The notes below the pieces were generated by a model that ran no database searches, was not told the origin of the DNA, and saw only the letters and a program-made list of their open reading frames with translations. Below, piece after piece: positions 40,675 to 50,577 of a stretch of 64,000 nt of DNA. A program made the translations under genes and the position numbers. The DNA comes from Adineta vaga. Lineage: Eukaryota; Animalia; Rotifera. The DNA lies in the NCBI GenBank assembly GCA_021613535.1, contig CP075494.1, positions 3,472,001 to 3,536,000 on the forward strand. The letters run 5' to 3'. Position 1 is the first letter of the stretch. Every line of letters starts with the position of its first letter.

Positions 40675-43600
40675 CTAATTACAAAATGATCTTTTAAGTT
40701 GAATGAAAATTCTGTAAGTTGTTGTTTGTTGAAATTCTTTCGTATAAAAAGTCGATGGTAGTATGTGTAAAACGTAACTGAATATTTGAGGAACATACGA
40801 AAGAAAATATCCAATTAATAGAATATATCGTTGCCATGCAAATGACAGTTCAGTACATGCTAAACTAAATGTAAGAATTAATTGAGGTAAATTACTAAAA
40901 ATAATAATTATTGGAGTAATATAAAGTTCTTTTTGTGTTAGAAATTGTTTTGTTAAAAGCTCTTTGAATGAATATTTATTTTCATGTTTGATTACTTTTG
41001 CATGTCCTCGTGTTGTAAATATAATCAAACTAGTCACTGATAATATCTGTATGACAAATGGACAAAGACTATGTAGAAGAACATTGACACGATCATAGGT
41101 TAAAATCGATTGTGTAGCAAAATTCATGACGCATAATGTGGCATTATTTGCATCTTTAACGATTGTATAATAGAAAACTTCATGAATATGTAGACCAAAT
41201 ATGATTAAGATGGTTATTAAACTGAAATAGATTGCTTTATTTGTTTTATGTAAACGATTTTTTCGTATTGATGGATAAAGAACAAGATGTAAACGATCGA
41301 TTGTAACTAAACTTAATAACCAATATATTGATCGATTTGATACAGATAATAGATATGAAAGACTTTTACATAAAATAATATTCATTAGTTGTAGATTATC
41401 AAGAAGATTATTTGAACTTAATAGAATATGAATAAATTTTAAAAGAAGAAGAGATAATGAGAATTGACTCAGAATCGAAATAATATAAAGATAATTTCCC
41501 GTACCAAATTGTCGAACATTTGAACGTTTAAATGTAGAAAAACATGGCACATTATTTAATAAACCGAGCAAGAAATTCATGAATACAATGAATAAATAAA
41601 TAAATCGCATTTCAAAACGATCTTTGGTTATTAAAGAATCAAGTGTAAAACTAAATGCGAGAGTACTGAATTCGCAAACATGTCCATAATAACATCGAGG
41701 GCAAAGACATAAGAATGAAGGTGTCTTCCATGAACTTACAGTTACATCTTCAATACAACGACCATTTGATAAACATTTTGAACAACTATCTGATGGAAAA
41801 GTAAAACATTCTGCACGATTACTATCAGCAGTACAAACACAAAGATAATAAGAATCATGAAAACATACGAGACGAGAATTTGATCGACAAAGTTTATGAT
41901 AATTATAAACATTAGGTACAGACAAATCTGAATAGAAAAGTATATTCTAGTGAAAAGGAATGAGAAATTAAATACTTTTACCATTTGCGAGTATTGAGAG
42001 ATCATTGACATCTGAGCAATGATATTCTAGTGAAGATGTTTTATTTATTGATATTGAATTATGTTGAAATGATAAGATAAAATAAAGAGGTTCATGATCA
42101 TATTTTTCATAAAGAATCAAAAGAGTAAGTGTTGGACCTTGAAGATATTCATGATAGTATTGAAATTGTATTGGAATTGATGAATAAATTTGTTGAAATT
42201 GTGGTCGAAGTCGATAAGTTGAAGAATAGATTTGATAATATCGAACGATCATTTTTAATGGGGAATAACTGATGTTTAAAAGATGAATTTCTATCGTTGG
42301 TTTTGAATATTGACAATGTTTTCCATAGAATCGATCTGTACATTGACATGCATACATATCAATTCCAGCTGGGTTATATTTTTGATAACAAATTCCATGG
42401 TTTTCACACGGTTGTGATTGGCAGACATTATAATGAATGTGACAAGTCGGACCAAAATGATTACGTGGACAAATACATAATGGTTGATTAATTCCATTGA
42501 TAATTCCTCGACAATTTCGTTTACAAATAGCACTTGAATGACAATATGAAATACAAATATCGAAGAATTGTTCACACGTTTTCCCATAGAATCCATTTTG
42601 ACAATGACAAATAAATGATGTGTTTGTATTAAGAATTGGAAAACAAGTGGAATTGTTCGAACAAGGATTACTTAAACATGCATTGTTATATGTTTCAAAT
42701 CGAAGAATTTTACTAAAACGAAATGAAGGAAGAAAATCGAAATAAATTGGATAATTCCAAATAGATTTCAATTGAATATGACTATTTTCTTTAAATTCAT
42801 ATAATTCAAATTGAACATGATAAGGATGAAAATGAATAATATTACTACGATTGAAATATCGCTCTTGTTTATTCTTCAAATAAGAATTCGATCGTGAATA
42901 GACGAAATAAAATCTTTGTCTTGACGAAGAATAAATATATGTCTTAAACATATCAATAATATCTTCATTGTAGAATAATATCGCTACTAAATACATTGTT
43001 TGTATTTCTATACCATTGAATTTAATCAAACAAGTAAGACGATCACTATAAAATTCACAATTCTGACCATAATAGTTTGGTGGACATAAACAGACTAAAT
43101 TACCATATTGTTGTAGAGCCATTCCACGATTACAAGCAGAGAGTTCATTATCAGGAATGCTTTTTCTTTCAAATTGACGATTAACAATCAATAATGGTAG
43201 TGGTCTTTCTGCTAATGATCTCAACAGATCTTTCATCAGTCGATTTCGTAGTGTAAATACCGCGTTTACTTCTGCACACCAATATTCATCTTCCCCGTAT
43301 GTACATTCAGCGCGTTGATTACATCGAGCATCTTTACGACATGTTCCATCAAAGCAAAGAACATCATGTTTTCCTGAACAAGATTGATTTAATCTGTTCT
43401 GTTGATGAAAACACAATGGTTCATCACCCGCACAACGTTTCTTACATAAGAATTCATAAGGAATACATTGCTTGATCGATGAATTTAAACAATGAAAATC
43501 AAAGTCTTGTGGTAATCTTTCAACTGAACACGATCGTCGATGCATACGTTCATCTAAACCACCATAACAATCAACAATATGATCTCCAATTTTTGCTATT

Positions 43601-45810
43601 GGTATACAAGGCCGATTTGTTTGAATATCGAGTGGATTCGATACATTTGCTAATAAACATGGATATTCCCATGTTAAATTACATATGTTATTAAAAGGAT
43701 AATGTTCTTTTGAATGTTTAATTTGACATTTTGATTTCAAATTCTTCAAATTAAAATATTGTCGATTATGATCAGAAAAATGTTGAATAATAAATATTCC
43801 TTGTTCATCTGAACCATCTGGACAATCCCATGATTGATCGCAAATATATGAAGCATGAATACATTGCCCAGATAAACATTGATACTGACCTGGTAAACAT
43901 ATCCACTGTTGACAACCGATGGGTAATTCATCTATCTTTGTTGTTGTATCCCACAATGCATCACAATAATAAATATATGGTATAACAGTTTCTGATGGAA
44001 TTATTCGGTCATGATTTTCAATATATAAACGAATGGTTCGACAAGCTTCTTGATCTCCTATTGTACATCTTAATGTTGAAAATGCTATTCCAGTACCATA
44101 GAAAAGCATATCATGATAATTGAAACATCCAGCAGTTCTTTTAAAATACAATTCTTTCGCTAAATAACATGTCGGCTGTTCGGATGAACATTGAAAACGA
44201 TGTTTATTAGATAAACACTTTGGTATACTTCTATTACCGATAATTTCATCAAGTGAATCATAACAATCGATCATTCGATCAAGTAGACGATGATCGGATA
44301 TACATTCACGTGATATTTCACATACATCATCGAATGTAGAAGGTTTTCCAAGAAAATTACTCTCATTATGATAACAATCTTGATGAAAATGTGGAGCATA
44401 CATTGATTGATTTTGGTGTGTTAAATCTTGATTAAAATTACACCAAGAAAAATCGTATTGAAACATACGAATAAATTCATCGTTCATTGAGAAAGATGTT
44501 ATATTCTCTTGATTAAAAGTTAAATGAAATCCTCGACATCTAAGACTTCCAAGAAGAAAGAAACTTTCAGGCTGAGTATCATACCAATTCGTATGATTAC
44601 GAGCATACATTGTATATGTTAGGATATTTAATAATCGCCCACGAGGATAAATAATCCATGCTGATGAACATATTTTATTGATGAATTCTTTGCAATCATT
44701 ACCAAAACAAGGACACCAAGGTGCGCGTCGAAAAACAAGAGCACATTTAATTAACCAAATGCATTGCCGATCCTGTGACCAATAATTAAAATCATTGATT
44801 TCATCGATATTAACATTATAAGCAGTAAAAGCAAGACAACGACCTTGTTTATTTGTCCATAATGGTAAGCTTCGAGATAATTCACATTGATATAAATACT
44901 CTCTATATGTGTCGCATTGATCATTTAAAGCATTGATTTGTTGAAAAGGTGTCCGAAAAACATACGGTATACATTTTCCATCACCACATGAAAATTGATT
45001 TCGATAACACAAATGTTCATCACAATGAAAACTTGAAAATGTCAATCGACAATTAGTTGGACTTTTCACCTGTTCATCACTATGATCCATACAATCCTGC
45101 TGTCCATCGAGAAAAAATTCCTCCGGTATACACATGCCATTCAAACAGCGATATTCCTCTTCTTCACATTCATTAAATTCTAAAAGATCACAATTCTCTT
45201 CATCCCATCCATCTGTACACTGTTGTCGACCATCACAAATATTTCGATAATCCAAACATAATAGACCTGAATCACATTTCAATGTTGTATAACATAATGT
45301 ATGCCCATACATTTGTTCTTTATGAATATTAAGAAAAAGACCTTTTTGTTTTAATTGTTCATCAAGATCATTCTGAATATTTGAATGAAAGTATAATTCA
45401 TATTCACAATATTTACCAAATGTATTAGGTTTTTTACATTCACATAGAATTTCATCTGTTGGATGTTTACTATTGTTTAAGAACTTTCCATAACCATCGG
45501 CTACTTCAATACTTGAGCTCCATTGCAGAATTTCTTCCATACTAACATTTTGTTCACGTAATTCTGAAAATCGATGTGTTGTAGAATCTGGTGCACATGT
45601 TTCATTCTTTCGACTTCGAGATTTTAAATCACCATCTCGACGACAGAAAGGGACGAATAGATCGGATAATTTATCTTGGTAATACACACAATCATATGCT
45701 TCAACATTCCTTTCATCTTCAGTATTGTATATAAAAACTAACAGATCAATCGATCGTACAAAAACGACTATTATCAACACGAATTTAACGATTAATACTG
45801 AGTTGAACAT
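40675..45810 (-). CDS. LDLa-repeat + EGF + 7TM receptor (about 1693 aa, 2 exons)
   Basis: Signal peptide from ATG 45810, many LDLa repeats (CDGRQQCTDGWDEENC) and EGF repeats, a phase-1 intron at 41928-41981, and a 7TM domain with VTIDR. Confidence 0.92.
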
Positions 45811-47260
45811 TCTAAAAAGAAAAGTTAGATACTCGCCCATATGGAAATTGAGGGTATGGGTGGGTGTGAGGGTCTATAGTCATCTATTACTAATGTCAAG
45901 CTTTTGCGTGTATATGCACCGATGAGCTCTAGGTTTGGGATATACGAAGGTCTAGTAGAATGTATCATTGTCTCTTTCAGGATTGAGTCGAGCGGGATCT
46001 AAAGAACTGACGCGTTACTAATTGTTATTATTTATCTAAAAAATGCACTCCATGAAATGATTAAATATCGTTCTAAAAATACATGAAAAAATCAACTATA
46101 ATCTTTCTAAACTATGTAGTAATTAGATGCATAAACAGATAGAAATTTTTAGTGGATTATATTAAATTAATAAATATTATCCAATTTGTTCGAGTATAGC
46201 TAAAAATGACTCCTAAACACATAGTTTTGTCTTTATCCAAAAAATGTGTGTGGATCGTGTTGTTGGCCTTTTCAGAGTTATATGGGGTTTTACGTAGGAT
46301 TAGAAGAAAAATATTCTCACAATTAACTGTTCAGATGTTTGGTGTTTATCGTAGTTTCATCATTCTAATTCATATTTGCAGTGCGAGATATTTTTACTTG
46401 AGAACCTATTCCAGAAAAAAATAGTGATCTCTATGGAAGTTGATTTTCTCCTCTCTTACCTTTCATAAATAAATACAAATGACTTCTTTTAGTTTTCAGA
46501 AAATCTGGAGGAATTATATAGATATAACCTTTTTCTCTCGTTCTGAAGCGAAGAAAAAATGATTTCATGAAGTAATTTCAGATTAGTATACGCAACTGAT
46601 ATCCATTAGAGATCTTATCTGTAAAAATATCAACATAAAAGAAACGGAAATTTGTTTTATAAAAATAAAACAACACATTAGATATTCAACCATACCGATG
46701 TGCCTTTTCATCAAACTTATGTTTATCGCGATTGTGCACGAACACAGTAGTGAGTCAAATGATTAAAACTTTGAGCGATAAAATCTGTTTTTGACCATTT
46801 GAATAAAAAATTTTCTTTTTTTGTTGATTCATGTCGTTATGACGCGATACCAGTAGATACATTACCTCTACTTTTCTTTCATCTGATTCTTTTCCGATGG
46901 ACATACTTTTGTTTGGAGCTAGGTCAGAAAGTTGCGGATATATCGTTGCGAACACAGAGTACTACATGACCAAAAAGTTGAAAAGTCTATACAGATAAAA
47001 CCTCATTTATGTGTTTTAAACAATGTATGGATATGAGCGTAAAGTTAACAAATCTCACACACCATACCCACATTCACCTATAGCTAAGACGGTCTTCCGT
47101 AAGTAGTTAATATGATTCAGCAAAAATAATCTGCATTATCATTCGTTAGTCAATAATATCAAAGTGTTTCAAAAAAGAAACAATGATGTTCTGTTATCTT
47201 TCTGTATATAAAAAGTAATGCGACATACACACATACAAATTCTTTTTATTCTATCTAGTG

Positions 47261-48478
47261 ATGATAATGCAACGTCAATTTTTATTCTTCTTCTTTTCAC
47301 TATACATCACAACTGTCGTGTCAAGTCACAGTGAGTATGGTCTGTCTCTATCGAAAGGTCAGTATCTCCTGTATCTGTATAAGAGTAAAAAATGGACAAA
47401 TCATATCATATTTTTAGCTGCACACAGTACTATAATGTCATGGACATCGGATGGCAAAACAGTAGCCGGTGGTAATGGTCCAGGTGGTGCGCTCAATCAA
47501 TTGAATGCTTCGTATGGAGTATTTGTTCAAGCAAATGATGATGTCTTTGTCAGTGATTATTTTAACAATCGAGTCGTTAAATGGGCGAAGGGTGCCTCGA
47601 CTGGCATCCTCTATGCGGGAGGTCAATGTGAAGTTAATCAACAGGATCATCTATGCAATCCTACTACTCTCACATTCGATAAGGAAGGCACTTTGTTTGT
47701 CACTGTTGAAAATAGCACAAACGGAGCCGTCATACGAATGAAGCGTGGAGCTGCCGGCACTGAAATGTTCATTACTGCTGATAGTTCTCTTTATGGCATT
47801 GTTTGGGATGAAAAAGAAGAATTTCTTTATCTTACCCATCATCGTGAGCATCGAGTAGTAAAATATTCAAAGGATGGACAATTCGTCAAAGTCGTTGCAG
47901 GAGGTAATGGTCGCGGAGCAGCTCTCAATCAGCTTGACTATCGTACGTAAACTTTCATTATACTCTATTTGCTAAATTGTTCATCTTTGATTTTCGTAGC
48001 ACGAGGTGTTGCCGTGGACCAAGATGGATCTGTCTACGTAGCAGATTCCAACAACCAGCGTTTAATGAAATGGACCGTCAATGCTGAACAAGGAGTTGTT
48101 ATTTTTGGTAGTCATGGTATTGGAAATCGGACTGATCAATTGGACACACCAGCCGCTCTTATTCGTGATAAAAGTGGAACACTTTATGTAGTAGATGAAC
48201 GTAATAATCGCATTATCGCTGTGCCTGTAGGTGCGCAAAATGGTACTGTTATTGCTGGTGGCAATAATCAACTCAATGTACCCATCTATTTGGCATTTAA
48301 CCAAAGGGGAGATTTGTATGTCAGTGATTCGAAAAATTTTCGAGTGCAAATGTTTACAATGAATAGCGATCCGATCAGTGACGGTGGTCACATTCTTGCA
48401 AACAAATCGATAATGTTCTTTTGTTTTCTACTATATGTGATAGATTTGAGCGCGCACTTGAAAATAAATGCTTTCTAA
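47261..48478 (+). CDS. Secreted NHL-repeat beta-propeller, possibly GPI-anchored (3 exons)
   Basis: Signal exon, introns 47332-47417 and 47943-47999, repeats of VAGGNG.G.ALNQL..P.GV.VD..G..YVADS.N.R, and a hydrophobic C-terminus. Confidence 0.92.
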
Positions 48479-48775: not shown

Positions 48776-50577
48776 TTATTGGTTAGCACTAAAACGCATA
48801 TCCGGCGTTCCATCTGCTTTGAGTGGACCATCTCCACTCCCATCACCACCAATACTTTCGACACTATTGATCATTCCTAGGAAACAATGAAGATGAAATA
48901 CATTGATCAGAGAATAGCTTAGTTTTTATTTACCTGACGAAGATTCCGCAATTTCACCACTACCACCATTGAGTACATCATCACGACTAATTTCACCGGA
49001 TGCAACAGCATCTTGACTTGCATTGTACCGCATATCAGCTGTACCATCACTTTTAGTTGGGATGGCCGTATTAGTTTCGCTAATTTCGTCCGGTACTGTT
49101 GGATTCATACTTAACTGGCCTTCATCTGATGCCGAAACGTTTACTTCTAAAAAAGTCAAATAAAACGGTTTATTTGTTTGTATGATGTAGATTATGATGA
49201 ATAGAATACCTTGTTGATTTTCTTTGCAGCGCATATCTAAAGATCCATCAGTATTGAGATGTTGATCTTCATCATTAACCAAATTCTCTCGATTTTCAGT
49301 TAAACGCATATCAGCATTGTCTAACAATTCATCACCACTATCATTAGATGAAATATTTGGCGCAGTAATAACTTTATTTTCTACACAGCGCATATCGGGA
49401 GAAGCATCTATATTTAAATGATGACCTTGATTGTCAACCAAATCTTCTCGATTATCCTTCAAACGCATGTCAATATTTCCGTTTGTCTGATTGTTATCAT
49501 TACCTAATGAAGTATTAATTGGAGCTTCAATTTTATTTTCCTCACAACGCTTATCTAGCGTCCCATCAACGTTCAAACGATGGCCAGTTTCATTAACCAA
49601 CCTTTCTCGATGTTCTTTGGCGCGCATATCCTCTGATCCATCCTCATTCAAATGTTGTTCTTGTGTCTGTCTACTTTTATTAGTATGTACCATACGCATG
49701 TCTGGATCGCCATACTTGTTTCGATCTTGATTTGCTGCATATCGTTCGTCAACTGTACCATCTTGCTTTCGAGGATAATTAAAATGATGGTAATTGCTAT
49801 CGCACATGTATTTGCTATTTTCTCCGTACGGATTTTGTCTCCGTTCTCTTGGATTTTTCGTACTGGTCACATGGGGTTTATATGTTTCCCATCTCTTATC
49901 ATCAGGAACGAAATTCTGGTCAATAAGCTTACCGATACTTTGTGTCACATCTCGGATGGTATTACCTTGATCATTCTTCATTTGTATGATGTCAACTTTG
50001 CCATCTTTATCAATAATGGCACGTAAACTGTCACTTATCCTAGCATGTTTGCCTAGCACCAGAATTCCACGTGTTGCCTAAAAAACAGAACAGTCAGTAA
50101 GTTTGTAAATAAGAAATAGATTGAAGAACAAATTACTTTCGTTTCGCACATATCGCGACAGATCTTTTCGTACTCCCTCTTCGGTACTGATCTATGATAA
50201 TCTTTTGCATCGACAACTGCTGTATTTCTGCGTACACCATCACAACTCCATGCAATCATGAAATCAGGACGTATATTTGATCCATTTTGTGAAGGCTGAT
50301 GGTTTTGTTTTGGATGATAAACACAAATGTTCTTATAAGTTTCAGCAGCTACTCGTTGTGCTGCTTGATTGAGTATTTCACCTGTTAATTTTTCATGTTC
50401 ATACCAAGAGCAAGAATTTTTTAATGATACAGCAGCATTTTGTTCGTTCAATGTCAAACCTGCAGTTTGTTGCGTAAAATTGTTTATTGAATAGTTCGAT
50501 CCTTGAGTATCATCTTGCATAAAATAAATTCCCCAAGGATCGGAAAGAATCAGTTCGTTGTCATTATCTGTAGACAT
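48776..50577 (-). CDS. Mrr-like PD-(D/E)XK nuclease domain fused to ten DGxxDMR repeats (540 aa, 4 exons)
   Basis: Exons 50577-50137, 50077-49210, 49146-48934 and 48876-48776 total 1623 nt and are open. Motifs: WYEHEKL, RPDF, VVDAKDY, ATRGILV. Confidence 0.82.

Follow-up and report, generated by a model that had tools for sequence, protein, structure and literature searches.

A four-exon gene on the minus strand of the 64-kb stretch of Adineta vaga DNA that we analysed (the window) encodes a 540-aa protein in which a divergent PD-(D/E)XK nuclease domain of Mrr_cat affinity is joined to a long, acidic tail carrying ten copies of a short motif that recurs in other animals. Taken as a whole, our best explanation, to which we give about an even chance, is that the gene is expressed, is an animal gene specific to bdelloids and encodes a protein of two parts, namely an active nuclease and a motif tail that would serve as a docking array. 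The docking part is suggested by the predicted disorder of the tail, by the conservation of the motif and by the range of domains to which the motif is fused.

Structure and conservation of the gene

The gene extends from 50577 to 48776 and comprises four exons and three introns (Table 1). The exons sum to 1623 nt, i.e., 540 codons and the stop, and each of the three introns (59, 63 and 57 nt) starts with GT and ends with AG. The original prediction of four exons joined into one 540-aa frame agrees throughout with the public A. vaga model I4U23_022847 (P0001, 540 aa), which is the window gene, 540 of 540 residues being collinear with the four exons. P0001, which was retrieved with the stop-free stretch 48929-50077 of the window as query, was used in the full-length analyses, and the exons were additionally searched one by one. 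Intron 2 preserves the reading frame and contains no stop, and thereby explains the 377-aa read-through ORF seen at this position. Moreover, the end of the nuclease domain and eight of the motif copies lie together in exon 2; hence, the nuclease and the repeats belong to a single gene, as had been supposed.

Table 1. Features of the nuclease/motif-tail gene; positions are those of the window, and residues are those of P0001
Feature	Position	Strand	Description
Whole gene	48776..50577	-	4 exons, 540 aa, identical to I4U23_022847 (P0001)
Exon 1	50137..50577	-	Residues 1-147: predicted disordered acidic N-terminus (1-55), then nuclease helix 1, strands 1-3 and helix 2
Intron 1	50078..50136	-	59 nt, GT..AG, phase 0; interrupts the nuclease domain
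Exon 2	49210..50077	-	Residues 148-436 and one base: remaining nuclease domain, helix/beta-hairpin extension (to ~247), motif copies 1-8
Intron 2	49147..49209	-	63 nt, GT..AG, in frame, without stops; retention would add 21 aa
Exon 3	48934..49146	-	Motif copy 9
Intron 3	48877..48933	-	57 nt, GT..AG
Exon 4	48776..48876	-	Motif copy 10 and stop codon; C-terminal peptide ends ...GPLKADGTPDMRFSANQ
Predicted PD-(D/E)XK (Mrr_cat-like) nuclease domain and extension	49778..50412	-	Residues 56-247, split by intron 1
E62 codon	50392..50394	-	Helix-1 glutamate, nearly invariant
D105 codon (D of RPD motif)	50263..50265	-	Invariant in 19 sequences
D123-A-K125 codons, (D/E)xK motif	50203..50211	-	D and K invariant
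Acidic tail, predicted disordered	48779..49777	-	Residues 248-540, split by introns 2 and 3; ten DG-x-x-DMR copies

Splicing was followed in contigs from four 2024 runs, which are only guessed to be RNA and have a depth of ~3. These contigs cover exonic segments only; one from run X4 contains the spliced junction of intron 1 (skipping 59 nt) and one from run X1 that of intron 3 (skipping 57 nt), while intron 2 is bridged by none of them, one contig stopping at its acceptor. Two of the three predicted introns, the first and the third, are thus seen to be removed in presumptive transcripts.

Orthologs with 50-58% identity over the query are present in A. steineri, A. ricciae and two Rotaria species. 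The position of intron 1 is common to the A. vaga paralog, A. ricciae and Rotaria, and that of intron 2 is shared with Rotaria. Between species, dN/dS amounts to 0.07-0.23 in the nuclease and the aligned tail alike (dN ~0.15-0.24, with dS saturated at 0.8-2.8), and the selection postulated earlier can therefore be described as long-term purifying selection. A transposable element or a pseudogene was considered and rejected, given the orthologs in four other bdelloids, the conserved introns and the low interspecies dN/dS.

The claim that the gene is intact among decaying neighbours did not survive, since the immediate neighbours (an LDLa/EGF gene, an NHL-repeat gene and a 7TM gene) look like ordinary genes. 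The first of these is an intact single ORF of 1290 aa with LDL-receptor class A and EGF domains (41968-45840 of the window, minus strand). The NHL-repeat gene (47258-48478, plus strand) appears as two same-frame ORFs with one stop between them; as this stop probably lies inside a short intron, the gene does not have a decayed look.

The A. vaga assembly (6 contigs, 100.8 Mb) contains three motif loci, namely the window gene, a paralog on contig 3 and a tail-only gene on contig 5. The contig 3 paralog (L002:1279-3194, at ~16.159-16.161 Mb) has the same architecture: its nuclease domain is 33-37% identical, intron 1 occupies the corresponding position, and the C-terminal peptide, after which a stop follows, is unchanged. 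Its tail contains 7.0 copies of a 69-nt unit at 97% identity, which points to a recent expansion. The public model of this paralog, P0015 (842 aa), extends into a beta-1,4-galactosyltransferase; because the stop comes directly after the conserved ...MRFSANQ, P0015 probably represents two merged genes. The contig 5 gene (L005:3790-4330; 5637867-5638292) has about three exons and four motif copies without a nuclease domain; it is a remnant or else encodes a self-contained tail protein.

In A. ricciae the ortholog has one intron more than in A. vaga and is tandemly duplicated (L008:1915-3682 and L008:8001-9768). The two copies are equal in length and differ at 54 of 1768 positions (3%), and their dN/dS of 0.69 (12 synonymous and 32 non-synonymous among 44 coding changes) is indistinguishable from neutrality. 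They lie within a repeated block that also includes genes for an SSF transporter and an AIG1/GIMAP-like GTPase.

The nuclease domain, its family and its origin

The AlphaFold (AF2) model of residues 40-235 (mean pLDDT 82.3, pTM 0.77) predicts a helix, three strands, a helix and a strand, which is the order of the canonical alpha-beta-beta-beta-alpha-beta PD-(D/E)XK core. The full-length AF2 model is confident for residues 55-255 only, including an extra helix and beta-hairpin at 207-246. The PD-(D/E)XK signature is present, with E on helix 1, (P)D on strand 2 and (D/E)xK on strand 3, and the sequence elements quoted in the original prediction were all found, each on the secondary-structure element named for it.

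Structural comparison with the PDB, which had been proposed as a check for a restriction-endonuclease fold, gave such folds as the top matches. The best Foldseek matches were MspJI, EcoT38I, AspBHI, AF1548, PaqCI, R2 endonuclease domains, FokI and LlaBIII. With VIA-align the top matches were again restriction-endonuclease folds throughout (Z up to 12.0), led by the nuclease domain of VC1899 (Z 12.0, rmsd 2.5 over 129 residues) and including PaqCI (Z 10.2), Can2 and Cdn1 (Z ~10), AF1548 (Z 9.9), LlaBIII (Z 9.1, 22% identity over 116 residues) and MspJI, AspBHI and McrC (Z 7.8-8.8).

In an alignment of 19 sequences that includes distant relatives, no substitution affects D105, D123, K125, K138 or D142, and E62 is nearly invariant; the catalytic D/D/K triad is accordingly kept in the orthologs. 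Given the predicted fold, the structure matches and the residue conservation, we accept the N-terminal part (residues ~56-201) as a divergent, Mrr_cat-like PD-(D/E)XK nuclease domain with an intact predicted active site (E62, D105, D123 and K125), in agreement with the layout and catalytic set first proposed. Such a domain would cut DNA, or less likely RNA, as a Mg2+-dependent phosphodiesterase.

The relation to Mrr_cat is a transitive one, suggested by sequence comparison through relatives. Neither P0001 nor its single exons gave a Pfam or NCBIfam Mrr_cat match, their scores staying below the Pfam gathering cut-off (21 bits for Mrr_cat, PF04471), and a six-frame search of the A. vaga genome with the Pfam Mrr_cat model returned no match. 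Three orthologs have sub-threshold Mrr_cat similarity (E 0.012-0.019, 15.5-16.2 bits), and relatives found by the family's own profile exceed the cut-off (P0087 with 30.4 bits, P0099 with 32.1 and P0096 with 22.3); P0087 matches the family profile at E 4e-15 and carries the UniRef name Mrr domain protein. When the 19-sequence profile was compared with PDB sequences, the Mrr-type domain of LlaBIII was the sole nuclease among the matches (E 0.016), the family DAK being aligned to the LlaBIII QAK; a six-sequence profile found nothing among the PDB sequences.

Outside the nuclease core, neither Pfam nor NCBIfam detected an Mrr_N winged-helix or any other reader domain for modified bases, and the full-length AF2 model predicts disorder for residues 1-55. 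These two observations, together with the lack of a Pfam match in the A. vaga genome, do not allow us to place the protein in the Mrr restriction-enzyme family proper. Hence, the term Mrr-type, as first applied to this gene, stands for the Mrr_cat-type affinity reached via relatives and falls in the functional sense, P0001 having no Pfam Mrr_cat match and no reader domain. For want of a modified-base reader domain, the notion of a modification-dependent enzyme is not supported either.

A search of 1.84 billion representative proteins with the nuclease-domain profile yielded 22 matches at E <=0.001, mostly bdelloid proteins or exon-sized fragments; the named ones come from Adineta steineri and Didymodactylos carnosus. 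No close prokaryotic donor was found among these representatives, the nearest non-bdelloid matches (E 5e-5 to 8e-4) having mixed contexts. One distant relative, P0095 (127 aa with a very acidic C-terminus; L010:658-1041), is encoded just upstream of two CD-NTase genes and a Cap15-like gene, a neighbourhood that represents a prokaryotic CBASS-type defence setting. Another non-bdelloid relative is encoded on a compact contig of 69.7 kb, possibly a giant virus, together with genes for ribonucleotide reductase, YqaJ and ankyrin proteins. Scans of viral contigs with P0013 and P0098 gave no confirmed relatives.

The introns are older than the paralog split, and any transfer must be older than both this split and the divergence of the bdelloid orders. 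Given its animal-type tail, the gene is most aptly called a chimera. The idea of a domesticated bacterial gene is thus not borne out, in view of the missing close donor among the 1.84 billion representatives, the metazoan-type tail and the age of the introns.

The motif tail and what it may do

Ten motif copies, the number first proposed, were mapped to residues 251-259, 267-275, 291-299, 316-324, 344-352, 369-377, 397-405, 422-430, 468-476 and 527-535. The middle six form three units of ~53 aa with two motifs per unit 25 aa apart. In a six-frame scan of the 64-kb window the strict motif was found eight times, always within this gene. Tandem Repeats Finder detected no DNA-level repeat in the tail, which indicates that the motif copies are old. 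Among five orthologs the motif cores are 66% identical vs. 49% for the other tail residues, and the C-terminal peptide ...GPLKADGTPDMRFSANQ is unchanged in the 33%-identical paralog and in three orthologs. The full-length AF2 model gives the tail pLDDT values below 50 across residues 260-540, which increase a little at the motifs.

When this tail and a second one rich in the motif served as queries, at least 286 motif-carrying proteins were identified at E <=0.001; the motif is present in P0013, P0016, P0046, P0058, P0081, P0185, P0194, P0207 and P0212. It spans 18 residues with the consensus GPLKKDGTPDMRYxxNK and the core D-G-[ST]-x-D-M-R; the consensus of 43 copies reads x-x-L-K-x-D-G-T-x-D-M-R-x-x-x-N-x-x, in which both aspartates and the arginine are invariant. 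The carriers include Cul3-type BTB-BACK adaptors of the corals Porites, Stylophora and Oculina and of the brachiopod Lingula, a kinase of the hemichordate Ptychodera and an uncharacterised protein of the amphioxus Branchiostoma, and among metagenome proteins there are carriers with a GIY-YIG nuclease, with another kinase domain, and with WWE, ankyrin-WWE or PARP catalytic domains. Identity between the rotifer and hemichordate two-motif units reaches 51%.

Pfam detected no repeat family in the tails of seven motif proteins, giving short look-alikes only, and the motif profile found only a chance 11-residue match in the PDB. An ESM Atlas feature search with the tail had no usable match. In the literature we found no paper on the motif, none on bdelloids together with Mrr and no relevant one for the locus tag I4U23_022847; the 4mC paper PMC8885841 mentions nothing relevant. 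Judged by these sequence comparisons, the motif appears as an ancient metazoan module that carries no annotation in Pfam, structures or literature.

Three resemblances were examined and set aside. For the motif array (P0058:68-113 and other copies), positions 87-132 of PF01795, the Pfam model of RsmH/MraW methyltransferases, gave a match at E 9e-7, which we take as a short local look-alike and not as homology. In an EF-hand or DxDxDG calcium loop, positions 1 and 3 ahead of D-G are occupied by acidic or Asn ligands, whereas the 43 copies mostly have L, K or N ahead of D-G. The tankyrase-binding consensus R-x-x-x-[DE]-G places an arginine four residues ahead of D-G, whereas most copies have P, H or G at this position and only a few have R.

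The tail of the window gene has a net charge of -30 and a pI of 4.4; in the orthologs the net charge is -19 to -35 and in the paralog -46 (pI ~4.3-4.6 for rotifer tails). Motif arrays outside the rotifers are basic, so that the feature conserved among the arrays is the motif and not the charge. Such a strongly acidic tail argues against direct binding of nucleic acid. Most likely, the disordered acidic tail (residues 248-540) would be a multivalent docking array, which would not itself bind nucleic acid and would bring the nuclease to a partner or an assembly common to other motif-bearing enzymes; the invariant C-terminal copy is probably the key docking site. A link to stress, DNA-damage or defence signalling may be envisaged.

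The tail was originally thought to be a multivalent nucleic-acid- or ion-binding element placing a modification-dependent (Mrr-type) nuclease on foreign or broken DNA, a proposal that we now consider unlikely. The D-G-x-x-D core, with two invariant aspartates and a glycine, loosely resembles calcium-binding loops, two distinct nuclease folds (Mrr-like and GIY-YIG) bear the motif tail, and the structural neighbours MspJI, AspBHI and McrC are modification-dependent enzymes. However, the positions of the first and third calcium ligands are usually L or K, the invariant Met-Arg is, to our knowledge, not a feature of calcium loops, and the search for a modified-base reader domain with Pfam and NCBIfam was negative. 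Moreover, the carriers are mostly non-nucleases (BTB-BACK, WWE, PARP and kinase proteins), and charge is not conserved between the rotifer tails (-19 to -46) and the basic arrays elsewhere. The nucleic-acid-binding part of this proposal is in addition opposed by the acidity and predicted disorder of the tail, and is not supported.

The opposite charges of the two parts, +6 (pI 9.0) for the nuclease domain against -30 for the tail and -46 for that of the paralog, would also suit autoinhibition, in which the acidic tail mimics nucleic acid and masks the basic nuclease until it is released by a signal, which could be proteolysis, a modification or the binding of a partner; inhibition of DNA-binding domains by acidic tails is familiar from other proteins. 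We regard this as distinctly unlikely, because in the full-length AF2 model the tail is not confidently packed against the domain and because an acidity specific to rotifers, given the basic arrays of other families, leaves the conservation of the motif unexplained.

That the nuclease fold is kept for binding and not for catalysis, making the protein a non-enzymatic adaptor or a DNA-binding scaffold like Rpb5 or the NACHT-associated inactive REase, is the most doubtful of these alternatives: Rpb5 chains do occur among the structural matches (Z ~7), relatives give weak NA-iREase1 Pfam matches (E 0.004-0.16) and a target-recognition domain was not seen, but two paralog groups and distant relatives keep the four canonical catalytic positions with little or no variation, whereas inactive REase derivatives have normally lost them.

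Known systems and significance

Restriction-type Mrr_cat nucleases are mostly prokaryotic. With the Mrr_cat (PF04471) proteins LlaBIII (Type ISP, 4xqk) and AF1548 (1y88), the rotifer domain shares the alpha-beta-beta-beta-alpha-beta core and the E...D...(D/Q/E)xK layout. Unlike these enzymes, however, it is encoded by an intron-bearing animal gene, P0001 scores below the Pfam cut-off, and the protein has no helicase, methylase or Mrr_N winged-helix and is fused to a disordered motif array.

The catalytic-domain fold is also common to the modification-dependent Type IV/IIM enzymes MspJI, AspBHI and McrC. Enzymes of this kind sense modified bases via an SRA-like or other reader domain or via the McrB GTPase, whereas the rotifer protein has neither a reader domain nor a McrB-type GTPase. 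The best superpositions were obtained with the CARF-linked PD-(D/E)XK effectors VC1899, Can2 and Cdn1, which exemplify a nuclease controlled by an attached sensor. In contrast to them, the rotifer protein has no CARF or SAVED domain, the identity is ~7-12%, and control, if there is any, would be exerted via the motif tail.

With the invertebrate motif-array proteins, none of which has been characterised, the rotifer protein shares the 18-aa motif and the two-motif unit, the terminal copy often lying at the very C-terminus. In these proteins the arrays are basic and rich in Ser and Gly, whereas the rotifer array is acidic, and the attached domain differs. A broader reading, which we regard as rather unlikely, is that the motif array is an ancient animal adaptor module that wires PARP, WWE readers, Cul3 adaptors, kinases, GIY-YIG and Mrr-like nucleases to one hub, the bdelloid protein being its DNA-cutting effector, in which a nuclease of prokaryotic or viral type was fused to an animal module. 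If true, it would amount to a signalling or defence network that has not yet been described.

Bdelloid rotifers are noted for their tolerance of DNA breakage and for the uptake of foreign genes. As a conserved, intron-bearing bdelloid family with a predicted intact catalytic site, the gene described here is a concrete candidate for an animal DNA-cutting effector. Moreover, its tail reveals a short motif shared across phyla, found beside ADP-ribosylation, ubiquitin-ligase, kinase and nuclease domains and carrying no database annotation. The binding partner of this motif could point to a recruitment system common to invertebrates.
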